Sequence record: OR670491.1
DNA: 64,000 bases
Direction: 5' to 3' (one strand)
The notes below the pieces were generated by a model that saw only the letters and a program-made list of their open reading frames with translations, made no database searches and was not told where the DNA came from. The translations under genes and the position numbers were made by a program. Positions 6,063 through 31,704 of the stretch are shown in pieces (positions within the stretch are counted from its first letter, which is position 1; the number at the start of each line of letters is the position of its first letter).

Positions 6063-7214
6063 TCAATAAACATCCCAAGGTAATGGTGTCTTTCTAAACC
6101 CATACCTAGTTGCGTTCTGCCCATCTCCGGCTATGTATCTACCAGTACCACACTGATATAATTCAGTACTGCTACATATCGCACCACCAATAGTACCACT
6201 ACCCCACTGAGTTATATTGGAATATAATATTGGCAAATCACTACATTTAGTATATAATGCAACAGTAGCAGCACCACTCGCACCACCAAAAACACTTCGG
6301 TTCGAACCCGTGTAATATATACCATCTGGACTCATAAATGCGGAAGTATAAGTTGTACTACAATCCACTGGACTTCTTATATTATTAAGATCACTTGGGT
6401 ATACCCTAGCACCATATGTGTATACATTACCTGTAGTAGTAATACCATTACCTAACTGACCATTATTTTGTCCACCACATGTAACTAACGATCCACTACC
6501 AGAAACAATGGCAGTAGCATTATAAGAAGTACCTATAACAATAGAAGCTCCCGCCAATAGGTATGGGGCAGGAACTCCGGCTGCATTCCCCTGACCTAAT
6601 TCACCATTGACATTTCTTCCCCATCCGTATACAGAAGTGGTATCCAATTGGCATAGTACTGAACCATAACTAAACGTATATCGTATATCCTTCACTGCCG
6701 ATGGTAAACCACTAACTTTAGTTGCAACACTAATAACGCCAGAAACGCCTGTTACTCCAGCGTTCGCGTTCAGATTACGTCCATATGCATATAAAGAGCC
6801 ATCAGCAGTTTTAATATGCATCATGCCATCTGTGCAATATAATGTATCTATACTACCCACTGCAACCTCTCCCATACTGGACGTTATATCGTTCCACCCA
6901 AGCGTTGTAGTACTAGAAATTAAGTTATTTCCGGCGTAAAGTATTCTATTATCATTAGTAACTACTACTGTATAATTGGCAGTAACGCCAATTAATCTAA
7001 CTTTCTCGTATATCTTAGACCACATTCCTATTGAATTTGTGTTAGTATCCAGAAACCCCAACTGACCAGCGGTATTATATCCAATACCCCACACATCACC
7101 TTCACTATCCAATAACACTTCATGGGAAAAACCAATCTTAAAATCTTTTATCGTTGGTGTTTCTGGAACAGGTTTAATATTTCCGTACTTAACCATTCTA
7201 GCAAAAGGTAACAT
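6063..7214 (-). CDS. RCC1/BLIP-II-like protein, paralog 4
   Basis: GYNTAGQLG, GRNVNGELGQG, GQNNGQLGNG. Confidence 0.88.
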   Translation of the reverse strand: MLPFARMVKYGNIKPVPETPTIKDFKIGFSHEVLLDSEGDVWGIGYNTAGQLGFLDTNTNSIGMWSKIYEKVRLIGVTANYTVVVTNDNRILYAGNNLISSTTTLGWNDITSSMGEVAVGSIDTLYCTDGMMHIKTADGSLYAYGRNLNANAGVTGVSGVISVATKVSGLPSAVKDIRYTFSYGSVLCQLDTTSVYGWGRNVNGELGQGNAAGVPAPYLLAGASIVIGTSYNATAIVSGSGSLVTCGGQNNGQLGNGITTTGNVYTYGARVYPSDLNNIRSPVDCSTTYTSAFMSPDGIYYTGSNRSVFGGASGAATVALYTKCSDLPILYSNITQWGSGTIGGAICSSTELYQCGTGRYIAGDGQNATRYGFRKTPLPWDVY

Positions 7215-7256
7215 AATTCCTCCTTTTATTTGTTATACTATATTTAATAAAAAAGA

Positions 7257-7281
7257 AAAGCCAGTATCAAGTACTGGCATT
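7257..7281 (-). terminator. intrinsic terminator
   Basis: GCCAGTA-TCAAG-TACTGGC. Confidence 0.7.
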
Positions 7282-7285
7282 ATTA

Positions 7286-8476
7286 TTACAATTGTCTAGG
7301 TGTATCCAGAACATATCTATTTGTACTAGGACCACCATCATCATCAGTTCCGGTTGAATATATATTTTTCATATCAGCAGTTAGAAAAGTACGATACGAA
7401 CCGCGATATATTTTTATTTTATCATACATAGAATATGTTATTTCTGACGGCAATGGACATGCAGTAAATTTACCAATGGTAACATCAGAACCAACACCCA
7501 ATGTGCCAGCATAACTACTCGCATTTAAACCAGTTGCATATACACCTGCACTCGTAACTAGTATACTAGATTGTGTTGGGTATCCAGTATGAATTGAATA
7601 CAAAGTACCGGGTGGTAAGGTTGTACTATTGTTTCCTAAAACTCCATTAACAGTGCTAGATGTAGTTTTATTTCCCCATGCTCCATTATTAGCTAATCCA
7701 CCAACTAGAAACTGACGTGCTCCTGTATTTGGATTCTCCACTAAAGCACTGACTGAACCCATTGAGCATACAGTGTATTGTAACGTTTTTGTGTATGTTG
7801 TACTTGGCTGATATAAAGTATATTCATTATATAAAGTCCATGTAGTGCTGGAACTTATACCGGATGTACCACCACCAATATATAAATTATTTTGTGTATC
7901 AAAAAACATTGCACAGCTATTTGTTGACATTATTTGTGCAATATCAACATCTGGTGTTACAGCTTTAACAAATGAACCATCGGTTATTTGTTGAGTTTTT
8001 CCAGTACCATCAGCGAATTGTTTAGCCCCACTCCAACCAGTACTCCATATTGTATTATTATCCATTAAGAAAGTAAACCACGTAGTACCTGCATACATCT
8101 GTTTAATTGAAGTACTTGAACTTTGTGTGAACAAATTTTCAATATATTGGTTATAACTTAAAAATGATGTAGTACTAGTTTCTAAACCAATATAACCACC
8201 ATAGCCACAATAAAAATAATTTAAGTCATTATCTTGTACTAACAAAGTTCCTTCTGACATCCAACAATCGTTAACGTTTTCTCTAATTAATGTCCATGTT
8301 CTTAATGCAGTGTTGTTTCCTCTCCCAAACTTCCCAAAACTATTATTGCCTCGTGCGTATAGTTGACCATCAGTATAAAGTACAACAACATCACTATTGA
8401 TTGGTATTATTTTCTTAATTTGAAGAGGCTCAGGTGTAATATTTCCATAATCAAACATTCTAACAAAAGGTAACAT
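7286..8476 (-). CDS. RCC1/BLIP-II-like protein, paralog 5
   Basis: GQLYARGNNSFGKFG; starts MLPFVRMFDYGN. Confidence 0.85.
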   Translation of the reverse strand: MLPFVRMFDYGNITPEPLQIKKIIPINSDVVVLYTDGQLYARGNNSFGKFGRGNNTALRTWTLIRENVNDCWMSEGTLLVQDNDLNYFYCGYGGYIGLETSTTSFLSYNQYIENLFTQSSSTSIKQMYAGTTWFTFLMDNNTIWSTGWSGAKQFADGTGKTQQITDGSFVKAVTPDVDIAQIMSTNSCAMFFDTQNNLYIGGGTSGISSSTTWTLYNEYTLYQPSTTYTKTLQYTVCSMGSVSALVENPNTGARQFLVGGLANNGAWGNKTTSSTVNGVLGNNSTTLPPGTLYSIHTGYPTQSSILVTSAGVYATGLNASSYAGTLGVGSDVTIGKFTACPLPSEITYSMYDKIKIYRGSYRTFLTADMKNIYSTGTDDDGGPSTNRYVLDTPRQL

Positions 8477-21230: not shown

Positions 21231-21305
21231 ATCAGGACGGGGAACGAAATAAGTAACTTCCCGTTAAGTAGCCCAGGAGTAAGGCACACGAAAAACTCCC
21301 CTGAT
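21231..21305 (+). ncRNA. candidate structured small RNA / leader, copy 1
   Basis: follows TTGCAA-16-TATAAT; ATCAGG/CCTGAT closing stem, ACGGG/CCCGT stem, GGAGT/ACTCC stem with 14-nt loop. Confidence 0.55.
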
Positions 21306-21373: not shown

Positions 21374-21985
21374 ATGAAAACTATCACTACTACTACTTTC
21401 GTTATGGATTTTTCTGAATTGAACGCAGAACAACAAACGTCAGCTATCGAACTGGTTCGGGATCGTGAGCGTTCATGTGAGGATAATTTCTTTGCTGAGG
21501 GCGTTATCGAGTACTATAAAGAAACAGTACTACCAGAATACGGCATAGATGAAGCTGAATTGCAATACAGTGGTTTTTGGTCGCAAGGTGACGGTGCATC
21601 AATCAGTACTGACAGCGTGGACGCAGTGAAGTTTTTACGCAAGATTAAAGCGTTAACGAAATATCGTTCTATCCGTCACTTGTTGAATGAAGATGATTTG
21701 GCAATGAGTGTAGAACGTTCACACTCTCGCTACGCACACGAAAACACGGTAAGCGGGTACATTGAATCGGCTTACACTGATTTAACCGCAAAACAAGAAA
21801 CGTTAGTTAATGAGCTTGAGGAACTACTCACTGATACTATTCGTGAATTGTCCCGCAAGTTGTACCGTGATTTAGAGAATGCATATGAGGATCAATTCAC
21901 TACTGAAAACATTACGGCACTGATTGAGGGTAACGAATATCAATTCAATGTTATTGATGGCGTAGTGGAATCAATCGAATATTAA
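21374..21985 (+). CDS. conserved hypothetical protein (YSGFWSQGDGAS motif)
   Basis: 203 aa acidic ORF, own promoter and GAGG RBS. Confidence 0.8.
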   Translation: MKTITTTTFVMDFSELNAEQQTSAIELVRDRERSCEDNFFAEGVIEYYKETVLPEYGIDEAELQYSGFWSQGDGASISTDSVDAVKFLRKIKALTKYRSIRHLLNEDDLAMSVERSHSRYAHENTVSGYIESAYTDLTAKQETLVNELEELLTDTIRELSRKLYRDLENAYEDQFTTENITALIEGNEYQFNVIDGVVESIEY

Positions 21986-22633: not shown

Positions 22634-22719
22634 AAAAGTACTTGCAATTAGTTTTCAGTACTGTATAATGGTTTACATCAAAGGGAGAAATGGTTCTCCC
22701 TGGTAATGAGGAAAATAAA

Positions 22720-22994: not shown

Positions 22995-23076
22995 TAGACG
23001 GATCTCGGCACCCGGTGGGTTAGTGACTGTTTCGTCTTGATGTAGTAATTATGCCAGTACTGGATGCACTTGTCAA
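22995..23076 (-). ncRNA. orphan leftward promoter + CCCA-GGGTGC element
   Basis: minus strand TTGACA-17-CATAAT...CTAACCCACCGGGTGCC. Confidence 0.4.
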
Positions 23077-23184
23077 CAACTATTTTTCAAATACTTTTTA
23101 TTAAAATACTTGCAATTAGTTTTTAAACGCGTATAATGTTTTGCATAGGGGGAGCGGTTCCCCTGGTAACTAAGGAATAATAAA

Positions 23185-23421
23185 ATGCTTGAACAAATCA
23201 AATCAACGTCTGCGAATGTAACGGGAACGGTATCACACTTTACTAGTGATGAATCGCGTGGTGTTCCTTATTGTGCTGTACATGTAAACACTGATGGCAA
23301 CTACTGGTTTACGGTTTACGGATCATATTCATTTGGACGGCCAGGGCATCAAAAAATTCTGGATAAAGTACAACCAACGGGTAAAAATATCACTGCCGAA
23401 ATGTTTTATAAAAAATCATAA
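23185..23421 (+). CDS. hypothetical protein
   Basis: own cassette, AAGGA RBS. Confidence 0.75.
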   Translation: MLEQIKSTSANVTGTVSHFTSDESRGVPYCAVHVNTDGNYWFTVYGSYSFGRPGHQKILDKVQPTGKNITAEMFYKKS

Positions 23422-23505
23422 AGTACTTGCAATTAGTTTTTAGTACTGTATAATATTTTACATCGCAAGGGGAAACGGTTTCCCCTGGTAACTAAGGATA
23501 ATCAA

Positions 23506-23805
23506 ATGAAAGTTGCAATCATCGCCCTGGCTTTATCTGTATCGTCTTTCGCTGTTAACGCTTCCGTTGATGTACCGCGTGAAAAATTCATTCAGTGCAC
23601 TGTTGCAATGACTAACGAGGAAACGGCTGAGATTGTTACCAAATCCCTGGAACTGGCCCCTGCAATGTTTGCTAATGGCCCGTACCATGAAGAAGATGAT
23701 CAGGGTAGCACGACCATCTATTACGATGCAAAAAGTAAACGCGGTTCAGTTACTGTAATGGATACTGAGAAAGTTACATTCACGGGAGTAATTAATTGTT
23801 TTTAA
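23506..23805 (+). CDS. putative exported protein
   Basis: Sec-type signal peptide MKVAIIALALSVSSFAVNA. Confidence 0.75.
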   Translation: MKVAIIALALSVSSFAVNASVDVPREKFIQCTVAMTNEETAEIVTKSLELAPAMFANGPYHEEDDQGSTTIYYDAKSKRGSVTVMDTEKVTFTGVINCF

Positions 23806-23821
23806 TGAAGTACTGAATCAT

Positions 23822-23851
23822 AAGCCCACTATAAGAAGTGGGCTTTTTTTA
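23822..23851 (+). terminator. intrinsic terminator
   Basis: AAGCCCACT-6-AGTGGGCTT + T tract. Confidence 0.85.
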
Positions 23852-23927
23852 TTGTAGTACTGAATACTTTAAAAATAGTTTTGAAATAGTAGTTGACATT
23901 ACCAGGGAAAGGCGTAGAATGTATTAC

Positions 23928-23990
23928 ATCAGGACGGGGAACACTAAGTAGACCGCCAGTAAGTCGAACGAAAAACTGGACACGACCTGG
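23928..23990 (+). ncRNA. candidate structured RNA / leader, copy 3 (divergent)
   Basis: ATCAGGACGGGGAAC start; CCAGT/ACTGG stem with the same 14-nt AAG-N4-ACGAAAA loop. Confidence 0.5.
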
Positions 23991-24035
23991 AAACTTTGAT
24001 AAACTAACTTACACTTTAATTGAGGAATTAAAAAA

Positions 24036-24515
24036 ATGGCAAATGTAAAATCATTCTTTAAAGCACTGGTATCTTCTGACGTATCTATCGCCGCTGAATT
24101 GCTGGCTGACCTGGATAATGATACCATGAAAGCAGTACGCAATAATTTTAATATGGCGTACAGTGCAGCAAAAGAACTGCAAGCCAAAAAGGTAGCAGAA
24201 CTGGAAGCGGCAAAGGCAGAACGTGAAGCAGAACTGCAAGCAACAATCGAAAGCATCCAGGCGGCGGTAAGTGGATTGGATATCGAGATCGTAACCGATA
24301 TGGCACATAAAGCCCTAGCTGCAAAATACGGTGAAGTAAAAGCGGTTAAAGAAAAGAAATGGATTCAGGACCGCGTTAACGTAGTACTTGACAACGGGGA
24401 AGAATATCTTATTCCTGTACGCGGTAACTGCATTGCCGTAGTACTGGACGCGATTAACTCCAGTGGTATGACACGCGAGGAATGGATCGAAGCTCATCGC
24501 AAAGTTGAAGCATAA
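24036..24515 (+). CDS. H-NS-like protein with degenerate DNA-binding motif
   Basis: central coiled coil; C-term NGEEYLIPVRGNCIAVVLDAINSSGMTREEWI aligns without gaps to the H-NS DNA-binding domain as I recall it. Confidence 0.55.
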   Translation: MANVKSFFKALVSSDVSIAAELLADLDNDTMKAVRNNFNMAYSAAKELQAKKVAELEAAKAEREAELQATIESIQAAVSGLDIEIVTDMAHKALAAKYGEVKAVKEKKWIQDRVNVVLDNGEEYLIPVRGNCIAVVLDAINSSGMTREEWIEAHRKVEA

Positions 24516-24536
24516 CAATAAAAGTACTGAATCACT

Positions 24537-24563
24537 AGCCCACCTTAAACGGTGGGCTTTTTT
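24537..24563 (+). terminator. intrinsic terminator
   Basis: AGCCCACC-6-GGTGGGCT + T tract. Confidence 0.85.
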
Positions 24564-24790
24564 GTGTTTATCGTTTACCAGGCCACCAGCACCGCCTAGA
24601 AACGATTCTAACGCATTAAACTGATTATCTGATGCATTGCCCTAGCTGGTGGCGTTAAGGCTGTAAGAACGCGATTGAGAGCGTTTAAAGTATTTTGCAA
24701 AAAGTAATAAAAAGTACTTGCACGATTAAGAGATTAGCGTATAATTAATTACATCAAGGCAAGACACCTTAACTAACTGAGGATATAAAG

Positions 24791-24943
24791 ATGAATACTT
24801 ATGACCTGGATTGTTTTACTTTACAAGTAATGTCAGTATGCAGTAAGAAAGATTGGTCATCAAAGGAATTTAAAGCAGTTATCGCGTGTGCAAAACACGG
24901 CAAGACTATCAATGAAACGGCATCAATCATTGATAAACTTTAA
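24791..24943 (+). CDS. hypothetical protein (50 aa)
   Basis: own promoter, GAGG RBS; C-term resembles 28686..28829. Confidence 0.55.
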   Translation: MNTYDLDCFTLQVMSVCSKKDWSSKEFKAVIACAKHGKTINETASIIDKL

Positions 24944-25012
24944 AAAATAGTTTGACAATAGTTTTAAGTACTGGCATAATACATACATCAACTACTGAAT
25001 AGGAATTAAAAA

Positions 25013-25240
25013 ATGGCTATTATCATTACTCGCGTATCTGGTACTACTGGCAACGAACAAGTAGTTGCAGTCATTACCAACAAGGAAGGTGCGGAATTGC
25101 AAAATGCAATGAATACCTGGGCCGTTAATGAGTTCGGTCAGTGGGCAAGTGTAGCATACATTGAAACCTATCAAGTGCCGTCGATTAGTTTAACTGATTT
25201 GGGCGTTGAGCGTATCCTTTGCCTGGATGAATTAAATTAA
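25013..25240 (+). CDS. hypothetical protein
   Basis: own promoter and RBS. Confidence 0.75.
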   Translation: MAIIITRVSGTTGNEQVVAVITNKEGAELQNAMNTWAVNEFGQWASVAYIETYQVPSISLTDLGVERILCLDELN

Positions 25241-25325
25241 AAAAGTACTTGCAAAGTAAATCGAATAAAGTATAATACATTACATCAAGGGGAGAAATGG
25301 TTCTCCCCACTACAAGGAAACTAAA

Positions 25326-25469
25326 ATGAAAACTTGTCAATGTGGTCATAAATCTATTACGGGTTTTAAGCGGGGCGTTGCTCTTTGCCAGTACCATTAT
25401 AATTTACAAGTATGGGGTAAAGAATGGGCCGACCAGGTGGAAGCAGCAAAGAAAGCAAAAAGTAAGTAA
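25326..25469 (+). CDS. small Cys/His-rich protein (47 aa)
   Basis: MKTCQCG...LCQYH; behind cassette. Confidence 0.6.
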   Translation: MKTCQCGHKSITGFKRGVALCQYHYNLQVWGKEWADQVEAAKKAKSK

Positions 25470-25557
25470 AATATTATCACAGTACTATTGACATAGTTTG
25501 ATAGTACTGGCATAATAGATTTTATCAAGACAACATATTAATTTAAGGAATACAAAA

Positions 25558-25881
25558 ATGGCTAAAACTATCATTAACACCGTTTCCCTGGCTGCAATCC
25601 GTGCAATCAATGTTGACGGTAAACGTTGGACTGATACATATGGCAATACTTATCATTCTTGTCATGTAAGCGTTGAACTGGATAACGGTTTGAATGATCT
25701 GGCGGTTGAATCATTTACTTATGGCTATGAAGATGCATATCAACAAACGGCGTTAGATCTATTAAAGGAATCAGTAGACGGGCTTAATACTGATGAAACC
25801 TCCCTTACTCGTTTGTGCAATGATCTTAATATCCCGTTGCATTGTACTGTACAGAATGTTAAACGCAAAAAAGATCTTTAA
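25558..25881 (+). CDS. hypothetical protein, paralog of 32407..32730
   Basis: RWTDxxGNTYHSC...TYGY...VKRKKD shared. Confidence 0.8.
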   Translation: MAKTIINTVSLAAIRAINVDGKRWTDTYGNTYHSCHVSVELDNGLNDLAVESFTYGYEDAYQQTALDLLKESVDGLNTDETSLTRLCNDLNIPLHCTVQNVKRKKDL

Positions 25882-25961
25882 TTAGCTTTACTTTATGCAG
25901 ATACTTTGATATAGTGTCTGCATAGGGGAAAGAAATTAAATTAACTTAAGAGGATCGTATA

Positions 25962-26231
25962 ATGAAAAATATCAGTACTTTAATCGATACAGGTACTCAT
26001 GTTCGTCGGTCTATGGTTGCAACCAGTACTACAAAACAAGTACCAAGCGGTTATCTTGTATTTGTGCACGATGGTAAACTCCTGGAACGTTCAATCAATT
26101 TTGATGTTAAAAACAATTGCCGTTTTATTATCTTTAAGCGTGAGCAATATAAAATTGATTTACCAGCAAAGCCCATAAGCGGGGCGTACAACGTGCAATC
26201 ATTGTTTGAACGTCAACCATACACCTATTAA
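25962..26231 (+). CDS. hypothetical protein
   Basis: GAGG RBS. Confidence 0.7.
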   Translation: MKNISTLIDTGTHVRRSMVATSTTKQVPSGYLVFVHDGKLLERSINFDVKNNCRFIIFKREQYKIDLPAKPISGAYNVQSLFERQPYTY

Positions 26232-31631: not shown

Positions 31632-31704
31632 ATCAGGACGGGGAACGAAATAAGTAACCCCGTTAAGTAGTCCAGGAGTAAGACATACGAAAAACTCCCC
31701 TGAT
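31632..31704 (+). ncRNA. candidate structured small RNA / leader, copy 2
   Basis: closely similar to 21231-21305 with all three stems retained. Confidence 0.55.

Follow-up and report, generated by a model that had tools for sequence, protein, structure and literature searches.

A gene of Rak2-like jumbo phages very probably encodes a deeply diverged member of the H-NS superfamily

Introduction

H-NS coats AT-rich incoming DNA, and H-NS and MvaT are two families accepted as one superfamily. None of the E. coli phage countermeasures known to us (T7 gp5.5, T4 Arn and MotB) is homologous to H-NS, and the phage-borne silencer homologs that we know of are canonical. In H-NS, the helices form a site 1/site 2 oligomerisation domain that is followed by a linker, and proteins of the superfamily are asymmetric in charge, with an acidic N-terminal domain and a basic linker and C-terminal part (PMC6936261). 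MvaT of Pseudomonas (PDB 2mxf, PF22055) is without the Q/RGR minor-groove motif; in its loop, KGGNH, N100 superimposes on R114 of H-NS, R80 replaces Q112 and the DNA backbone is held by a group of lysines, and repression is lost in the N100A and R80A mutants (PMC4466236). Truncated or DNA-binding-defective relatives of H-NS are known dominant negatives, among them H-NST, a horizontally acquired protein of pathogenicity islands that acts through its oligomerisation domain, whereas Ler, the LEE-encoded counter-silencer (PDB 2lev), resembles H-NS in the C-domain only, has retained a minor-groove contact through Arg and binds DNA (PMC7074111).

Phages act on xenogeneic silencers of their hosts through early proteins such as T7 gp5.5, which according to a title cited in PMC6936261 inhibits H-NS via its central oligomerisation domain, T4 Arn and MotB (PMC6070864) and LUZ24 Mip; these are unrelated small proteins or DNA mimics. 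Phage-encoded silencer homologs include the H-NS of EPV1 and the actinophage and prophage homologs of Lsr2, such as CgpS (PMC3097231, PMC7074111), which are recent host-derived copies with intact DNA-binding motifs, that of EPV1 being 47% identical to the host protein. Here, we describe a small gene of an Escherichia jumbo phage and its family in related phages, which a first-pass annotation of the DNA had read as an H-NS-like protein lacking the minor-groove motif.

Results

The window analysed here is a 64,000-nucleotide stretch of sequence record OR670491.1, in which positions 23000-26000 are 100% identical to Escherichia phage vB_EcoM_JNE01, a 355.6-kb jumbo phage whose close relatives G17 and vB_Ec-M-J belong to Asteriusvirus (Rak2/121Q group); the phage genome is 355 kb long with 36% G+C. 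The open reading frame named in the first-pass annotation is present on the + strand at 24036..24515, stop codon included, and encodes a putative divergent H-NS-superfamily protein of 159 aa (PHROG 27871). A consensus scan places a predicted sigma-70-type promoter, TTGACA-16 nt-TAGAAT, with 11 of 12 consensus positions, at 23893..23920 (+), and the terminator-like hairpin of the upstream gene (23822-23845) lies just 5' of it. If transcription starts directly after the promoter, the leader (23927..24035, +) is about 109 nt long; it holds the ribosome-binding site GAGGA (24022-24026, +) and a small + strand hairpin of 5 bp, in which 23956-23960 pairs with 23975-23979 around a loop, 23961-23974, that reads AAG-N4-ACGAAAA. 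Folded as a whole, the leader RNA is no more stable than its shuffles (z = -0.32). Downstream of the stop codon, an intrinsic-terminator-like hairpin of 8 pairs (6 G-C) followed by a T run lies at 24537..24566 (+), and an equivalent terminator is annotated in phages G17 and Muenster. Since the gene has its own near-consensus promoter behind the upstream hairpin as well as its own terminator, it is apparently a single-gene unit, and these signals make it look like one read by host RNA polymerase.

The family is small and narrowly distributed. A word-indexed search of 5.8 billion proteins returned only 22 clusters at 66-100% identity, and when 1.84 billion representatives were searched exhaustively with an HMMER profile, 14 clusters of 151-225 aa came up, down to 27% identity. 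The family alignment offers no stretch conserved enough to serve as a query for related loci, and scans of viral contigs with the single protein found 0-1 loci each. By tblastn, the family occurs only in Rak2-like jumbo phages of Enterobacterales, roughly 310-385 kb in size, with hosts in Escherichia, Salmonella, Klebsiella, Erwinia, Yersinia, Pectobacterium, Cronobacter and Serratia. In phages with mapped genome ends, the ortholog sits inside the direct terminal repeat, near the left end and pointing inward: it is gene 13 of vB_Ec-M-J (6853-7335; 21.5-kb repeat), gene 11 of Klebsiella phage Muenster (20-kb repeat) and gp003 of Pectobacterium phage CBB (22.5-kb repeat), and it also lies inside the terminal repeat of fENko-Kae01, while the ortholog of Yersinia phage fHe-Yen9-04 is g001. 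The terminal repeat of CBB carries RpoD-like promoters and was suggested by its authors to be a possible continuation of the early region (PMC5259590). Because the gene lies only a few kb from the leading end, inside the terminal repeat, its product is likely to be one of the earliest proteins that the phage makes. [quoted passage not shown]

Direct sequence comparison with H-NS leads to the same alignment that the first-pass annotation had proposed, without being decisive. That annotation had set the C-terminus without gaps against an H-NS C-terminus that proves to be the real sequence of E. coli K-12 H-NS (NC_000913.3). BLASTP finds the same ungapped register, pairing phage residues 113-151 with H-NS 96-134 (9/39 identical); the 32-residue segment quoted earlier corresponds to residues 120-151, and all eight identities named then are among the nine. 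The E-value is only 0.043, from a single pairwise comparison, so that this match alone is not beyond chance. The reported replacements, QGR by RGN and TWT by LIP, are also borne out: R129-G130-N131 face Q112-G113-R114 of H-NS, and L125-I126-P127 face T108-W109-T110.

Domain models and database searches did not reach H-NS from single sequences. Neither the 159-aa protein nor any of the 14 family members matches PF00816 (Histone_HNS) at E<=10 or PF22055 (MvaT), and none of the 14 reaches the curated cut-off of PF22470 (Histone_HNS_N; 24.5 bits), for which 2 of the 14 give sub-threshold matches, the best being relative P0028 with 21.5 bits. The Pfam model of the H-NS C-domain finds nothing in the whole G17 genome, and the same model recovers H-NS and StpA in E. 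coli. Across Pfam, NCBIfam and PHROGs scans the sole match was PHROG 27871 (function unknown). Sub-threshold matches to RNase H, Tox-PL-2, DUF3846 and others differ between family members and were set aside as noise. Sequence and profile searches of the PDB returned no H-NS and nothing significant (best ApeA, E 0.089), a tblastn search with H-NS against 50,697 phage records gave zero phage matches, and the ESM Atlas gave unnamed clusters only, at 0.76-0.77, under the lead threshold. HMMER profile-to-sequence comparisons in both directions scored barely above reversed controls and were not counted as evidence.

The comparison of profile with profile is where the relationship emerges. An H-NS profile was built from E. 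coli H-NS and 24 diverse H-NS proteins (25 in total, from a PF00816 sampling of 151 Pseudomonadota genomes) and compared by hhalign with the alignment of the 14-member phage family. The two match with a probability of 84% (P 7.7e-6, score 40.5) over 86 collinear columns, which pair phage residues 61-154 with H-NS 39-137. Decoys of the H-NS profile score 9.8+-2.4 when column-shuffled (max 18.9) and 13.1+-3.0 when block-shuffled (max 22.4). Reversing one partner reduces the score to 18.7-21.5, and reversing both keeps 34.8, which is the behaviour expected of a true collinear match. The central helix-turn region, similar to site 2, is the main source of the signal: the N-terminal parts alone score 25.3 against decoys of 9.9+-2.5 (max 15.7; z ~6), aligning residues 61-89 with H-NS 39-78, and the C-domains alone score 18.6 against decoys of 10.9+-2.1 (max 17.9). 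The site 1 region (alpha1, alpha2 and the start of alpha3) has no significant similarity to H-NS.

With a 16-member MvaT profile as a yardstick, the control comparison of H-NS with MvaT gives a score of 44.3 and a probability of 92%, so the match of the phage family to H-NS is about as deep as that of H-NS to MvaT (40.5 vs 44.3). Against the MvaT profile itself the phage family stays at noise level (18.8 vs a decoy maximum of 17.8), and it is closer to gammaproteobacterial, host-type H-NS (33.9) than to other H-NS (19.4). The distant phage members alone score 37.7 against H-NS, and the Asteriusvirus subfamily alone scores 20.8, through the C-domain only and in the same register. Since the signal comes from the diversity of the family, the link of the 24036-24515 protein to H-NS is transitive through its relatives.

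A resemblance that arose by convergence is one alternative. The protein would then be unrelated to H-NS, its coiled coil being followed by a small beta-beta-alpha unit of a common kind, with some other early function, for instance as an anti-defence protein or an adaptor. The similarity, however, is collinear over both domains in a single register and survives the block-shuffled and reversed decoys, while the cross-domain controls, N-terminal part against C-domain, are low (10.6 and 14.9). In addition, others recorded for the Muenster homolog, in its GenBank note, an 'HHpred hit to NP_417155.1 97.2% probability'; this accession is that of StpA, the paralog of H-NS.

AlphaFold2, run with the 14-sequence alignment, models the full protein with a mean pLDDT of 82, as helices at residues 2-12, 16-23, 28-77 and 83-98, strands at 113-117 and 123-127, a loop, and helices at 134-143 and 147-154. 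The predicted N-terminal helical region (residues 2-98; 24039..24329, +) has its helices in the order of the H-NS oligomerisation domain; what had been noticed earlier as a long Ala/Glu/Lys coiled coil is one continuous predicted helix (28-77), and the invariant G80 lies in the turn G-L-D-I-E (nt 24273-24287, +). The flexible linker (residues 99-112; 24330..24371, +) is Lys-rich with a net charge of only +2 and no secondary structure, and the model is least confident here (mean pLDDT 59 for residues 101-110). The C-terminal beta-beta-alpha-alpha module (residues 113-154; 24372..24497, +; net about -4) is predicted to take the H-NS/MvaT/Ler-type DNA-binding fold, two strands followed by a helix and a short helix, with the loop R129-G130-N131 at 24420..24428 (+) placed by the alignments. 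In the model, helices and linker together reproduce the layout of the H-NS oligomerisation domain, with a helical half about 20 residues longer.

Because the long helix attracts generic coiled coils, fold searches with the whole model were uninformative and the C-terminal module was searched alone. Residues 106-159, aligned with eleven homologs and modelled alone, gave a pLDDT of 84, and the best structural matches of this isolated model are the DNA-binding domains of MvaT, Ler and H-NS, with low absolute scores. Among 350,542 PDB chains, Foldseek placed E. coli H-NS (1hnr), Salmonella H-NS (2l93) and Ler (2lev) at ranks 4-6, with the best TM-scores (0.41-0.47) and the lowest rmsd (3.2-4.4 A) of the full-domain alignments; ranks 1-3 were ubiquitin-like with an rmsd of 6.4-6.8 A, and every E-value was >1. 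With a second structural aligner, applied to 48,161 chains, H-NS-family domains again came first or close to it. A domain as small as this one, about 45 residues, can be expected to score weakly in absolute terms, and in these models the two aligners appear to single out the same small family, with residues paired as in the sequence alignment. The rankings of both aligners thus count against convergence as well, and we consider an origin apart from H-NS quite improbable. The label 'H-NS-like' of the first-pass annotation is supported by the profile match, by the predicted architecture and C-domain fold and by the independent StpA match of the Muenster homolog, and with good confidence we regard the 24036-24515 protein as a true relative within the H-NS superfamily.

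The features by which H-NS reads DNA are changed in the whole family. Its invariant residues are only M1, G80, G130, N131 and the C-terminal A159, and L23, F38, E66, K97, R113, V116, G121, G144 and I151 are nearly invariant. The Q/RGR motif is absent, being R-G-N here and x-G-N across the family, and the position of TWT is hydrophobic-x-Pro. The earlier claim that the protein lacks the minor-groove motif thus stands for Q/RGR, but not as a loss of DNA reading: MvaT reads DNA without Q/RGR, so loss of QGR does not mean loss of reading, and hhalign of H-NS against MvaT pairs G113-R114 with G99-N100, the position at which the invariant G130-N131 sits. As G99-N100 contacts DNA in MvaT, the phage C-domain may bind DNA too.

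That correspondence would also suit a different role, in which the protein is a DNA-binding nucleoid protein of the phage's own, or a counter-silencer like Ler, that coats or organises phage DNA and displaces H-NS by competition rather than through mixed filaments. Its contact with DNA would be MvaT-like, made by the invariant Gly-Asn loop, an arginine (R113 or R129) and the lysines of the linker. The AT-pincer of MvaT combines the Gly-Asn loop with an Arg ahead of beta1, and R113, nearly invariant in the phage family, is at most a candidate for the place of R80. Charge speaks against such a role: the N-region, linker and folded C-domain carry net charges of -4, +2 and -4 in the phage protein and of -7, +6 and -1 in H-NS, so that the charge asymmetry typical of H-NS is not found, and across the family the folded C-domain ranges from -5 to 0. 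The MvaT-type lysine network is mostly absent as well, with Leu137 at a helix position that most relatives fill with Lys, and the MvaT profile match stays, as noted, at noise. A nucleoid protein or competitor of this kind is conceivable, and we think it rather unlikely.

The first-pass annotation had also put the protein forward as a candidate binder of AGTACT, a hexamer with 307 sites vs 22 expected in the window (about 14-fold over-represented). The hexamer is enriched 10-26-fold in nearly all loci with a family member (about 10-fold in 50 kb of RaK2), and PA5oct, a jumbo relative in which no homolog is detectable, has no enrichment (4 sites vs 13.9 expected in 50 kb), as would fit a sequence-specific reader. 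This co-occurrence follows phylogeny, however, since all carriers form one clade, and contig L119 has a family member but a single site vs 0.5 expected in 3.3 kb; a further contig (L122) has 2 vs 0.2 expected and, at 874 bases, is too short to judge. Many AGTACT sites, moreover, directly adjoin promoter-like sequences of the form TTGCAA-16-TATAAT, which points to a transcription signal recognised by another factor, and H-NS-type domains read the shape of the minor groove, not hexamers. With co-occurrence confounded by shared ancestry and one carrier unenriched, the proposal finds no specific support, and we hold it to be very improbable.

The hexamer nevertheless marks a pattern of its own, common to the enterobacterial Rak2-like phages and seen neither in PA5oct nor in L119, the only carrier contig without enrichment, which may derive from a lineage outside the known Rak2-like genera. 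At no fewer than nine places AGTACT ends exactly at the start of a TTGCAA-16-TATAAT promoter-like site (20630/20635, 21191/21196, 21993/21998, 22637/22642, 23422/23427, 25244/25249, 26756/26761, 26985/26990 and 27588/27593), and a second copy follows 20 nt later, inside the spacer, at 22657, 23442 and 27005. The combination resembles a promoter class that is specific to the phage and differs from the TTGACA class, to which the promoter of the H-NS-like gene belongs.

The surroundings of the gene are rich in other signals. Between 19000 and 29000 there are 58 sigma-70-like promoters vs 33+-6 expected, four of them perfect (12/12) TTGACA-16-TATAAT sites, interspersed with terminator-like hairpins and short + strand ORFs, and none of the ten neighbouring ORFs of this region has a Pfam family; this stretch has the appearance of a pre-early block for host takeover within the terminal repeat. 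The loop motif of the leader, AAG-N4-ACGAAAA, occurs in 3 copies vs 0.3 expected on the + strand of the window (21281-21294, 23961-23974 and 31680-31693) and may be a regulatory RNA or protein-binding element shared by a few early transcripts. The ORF directly upstream (23506-23805, +; 99 aa; without a Pfam family) begins with a signal-peptide-like hydrophobic stretch that ends in an Ala-x-Ala-type site, which suggests a small exported early protein. In the terminal repeat of Muenster (L146:1-458), a 612-bp gene annotated 'YeeU-like antitoxin' lies three genes upstream of the H-NS-like gene, and at a comparable place upstream in the window there is an ORF of equal length, likewise 612 bp (21374-21985, +; no Pfam match), the two being compared by length and place only.

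Discussion

The gene at 24036-24515 is real and conserved, and the protein that it encodes very probably belongs to the H-NS superfamily, as a member that has diverged deeply. Of the readings considered, the one that we favour, at a probability of roughly 45%, is that this presumably early protein modulates xenogeneic silencing. Made early from the terminal repeat by way of the host sigma-70 promoter, it would join filaments of host H-NS/StpA through its site-2-like helix-turn-helix, where the resemblance to H-NS is greatest, and would then contribute to the filament a C-domain without the Q/RGR hook or basic charge; the filament would be weakened or re-targeted, and the silencing of the 36% G+C phage DNA modulated. 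The analysis shows the reading frame with its signals, its range among phages and its position, the profile similarity and a predicted fold; that the protein is expressed early, binds H-NS and affects silencing is our inference, and as to the manner of action our best guess, a tentative one, is an anti-silencing factor that enters the filaments as a hetero-oligomerising antagonist. The acidic C-domain (-4) and the weakly basic linker (+2 vs +6 in H-NS) fit the dominant-negative idea, and the strong conservation of the C-domain argues against a pure mimic of truncated H-NST.

Set beside the known systems, the protein is closest in plan to H-NS and StpA of Enterobacterales (PF22470 + PF00816), with which it shares, in its predicted structure, alpha1, alpha2, a long alpha3, a Gly turn, alpha4, the linker, a beta-hairpin, a loop, a helix and a short helix. 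It differs from them in being encoded by a lytic phage, in having no Pfam match and a helical half longer by about 20 residues, and in its x-G-N for Q/RGR, hydrophobic-x-Pro for TWT, linker of +2 instead of +6 and C-domain of -4. With MvaT it has in common the position of the Gly-Asn loop, but not a profile similarity above noise, the lysine network or the overall basic charge. Like H-NST, it would be an acquired H-NS relative working through oligomerisation, but H-NST is without any C-terminal domain and the phage protein keeps a conserved one. It resembles gp5.5, Arn, MotB and Mip as a putative early phage protein directed at the host silencer, and differs in that those are not H-NS homologs; it resembles the H-NS of EPV1 and the Lsr2 homologs as a silencer homolog of phage origin, and differs in being far diverged and restricted to lytic jumbo phages. 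The nearest previous description is that of CPT_Muenster_011 (QOE32183.1), a member of the same family (35% identity over 99% of the protein) in the terminal repeat of Klebsiella phage Muenster, which is labelled only 'putative DNA-binding protein' and on which the genome paper is silent. The H-NS likeness of the family was recorded earlier only in the GenBank note of that phage, the other homologs inspected being 'hypothetical protein' or in unannotated records, and our literature search found no paper linking Rak2-like phages with H-NS.

Extended to the clade, the favoured reading becomes a bolder proposal that we consider doubtful: all enterobacterial Rak2-like jumbo phages might carry a 'filament-poisoning' H-NS mimic at the leading end, in two copies per genome, with an acidic, hookless C-domain whose Gly-Asn loop is repurposed for phage DNA or for another protein. 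If true, this would be an anti-silencing mechanism distinct from those of H-NST, gp5.5, Arn and Ler.

For the annotation of these phages, about 60 database records could be changed from 'hypothetical protein' to 'H-NS-like protein'. The invariant Gly-Asn loop would give a natural comparison of H-NS-type and MvaT-type DNA-reading loops. A 355-kb phage of 36% G+C with host-like sigma-70 early promoters should be a prime target of H-NS, and a diverged H-NS paralog at the entering end of a whole jumbo-phage clade would give a testable handle on how the first genes of such phages are expressed.
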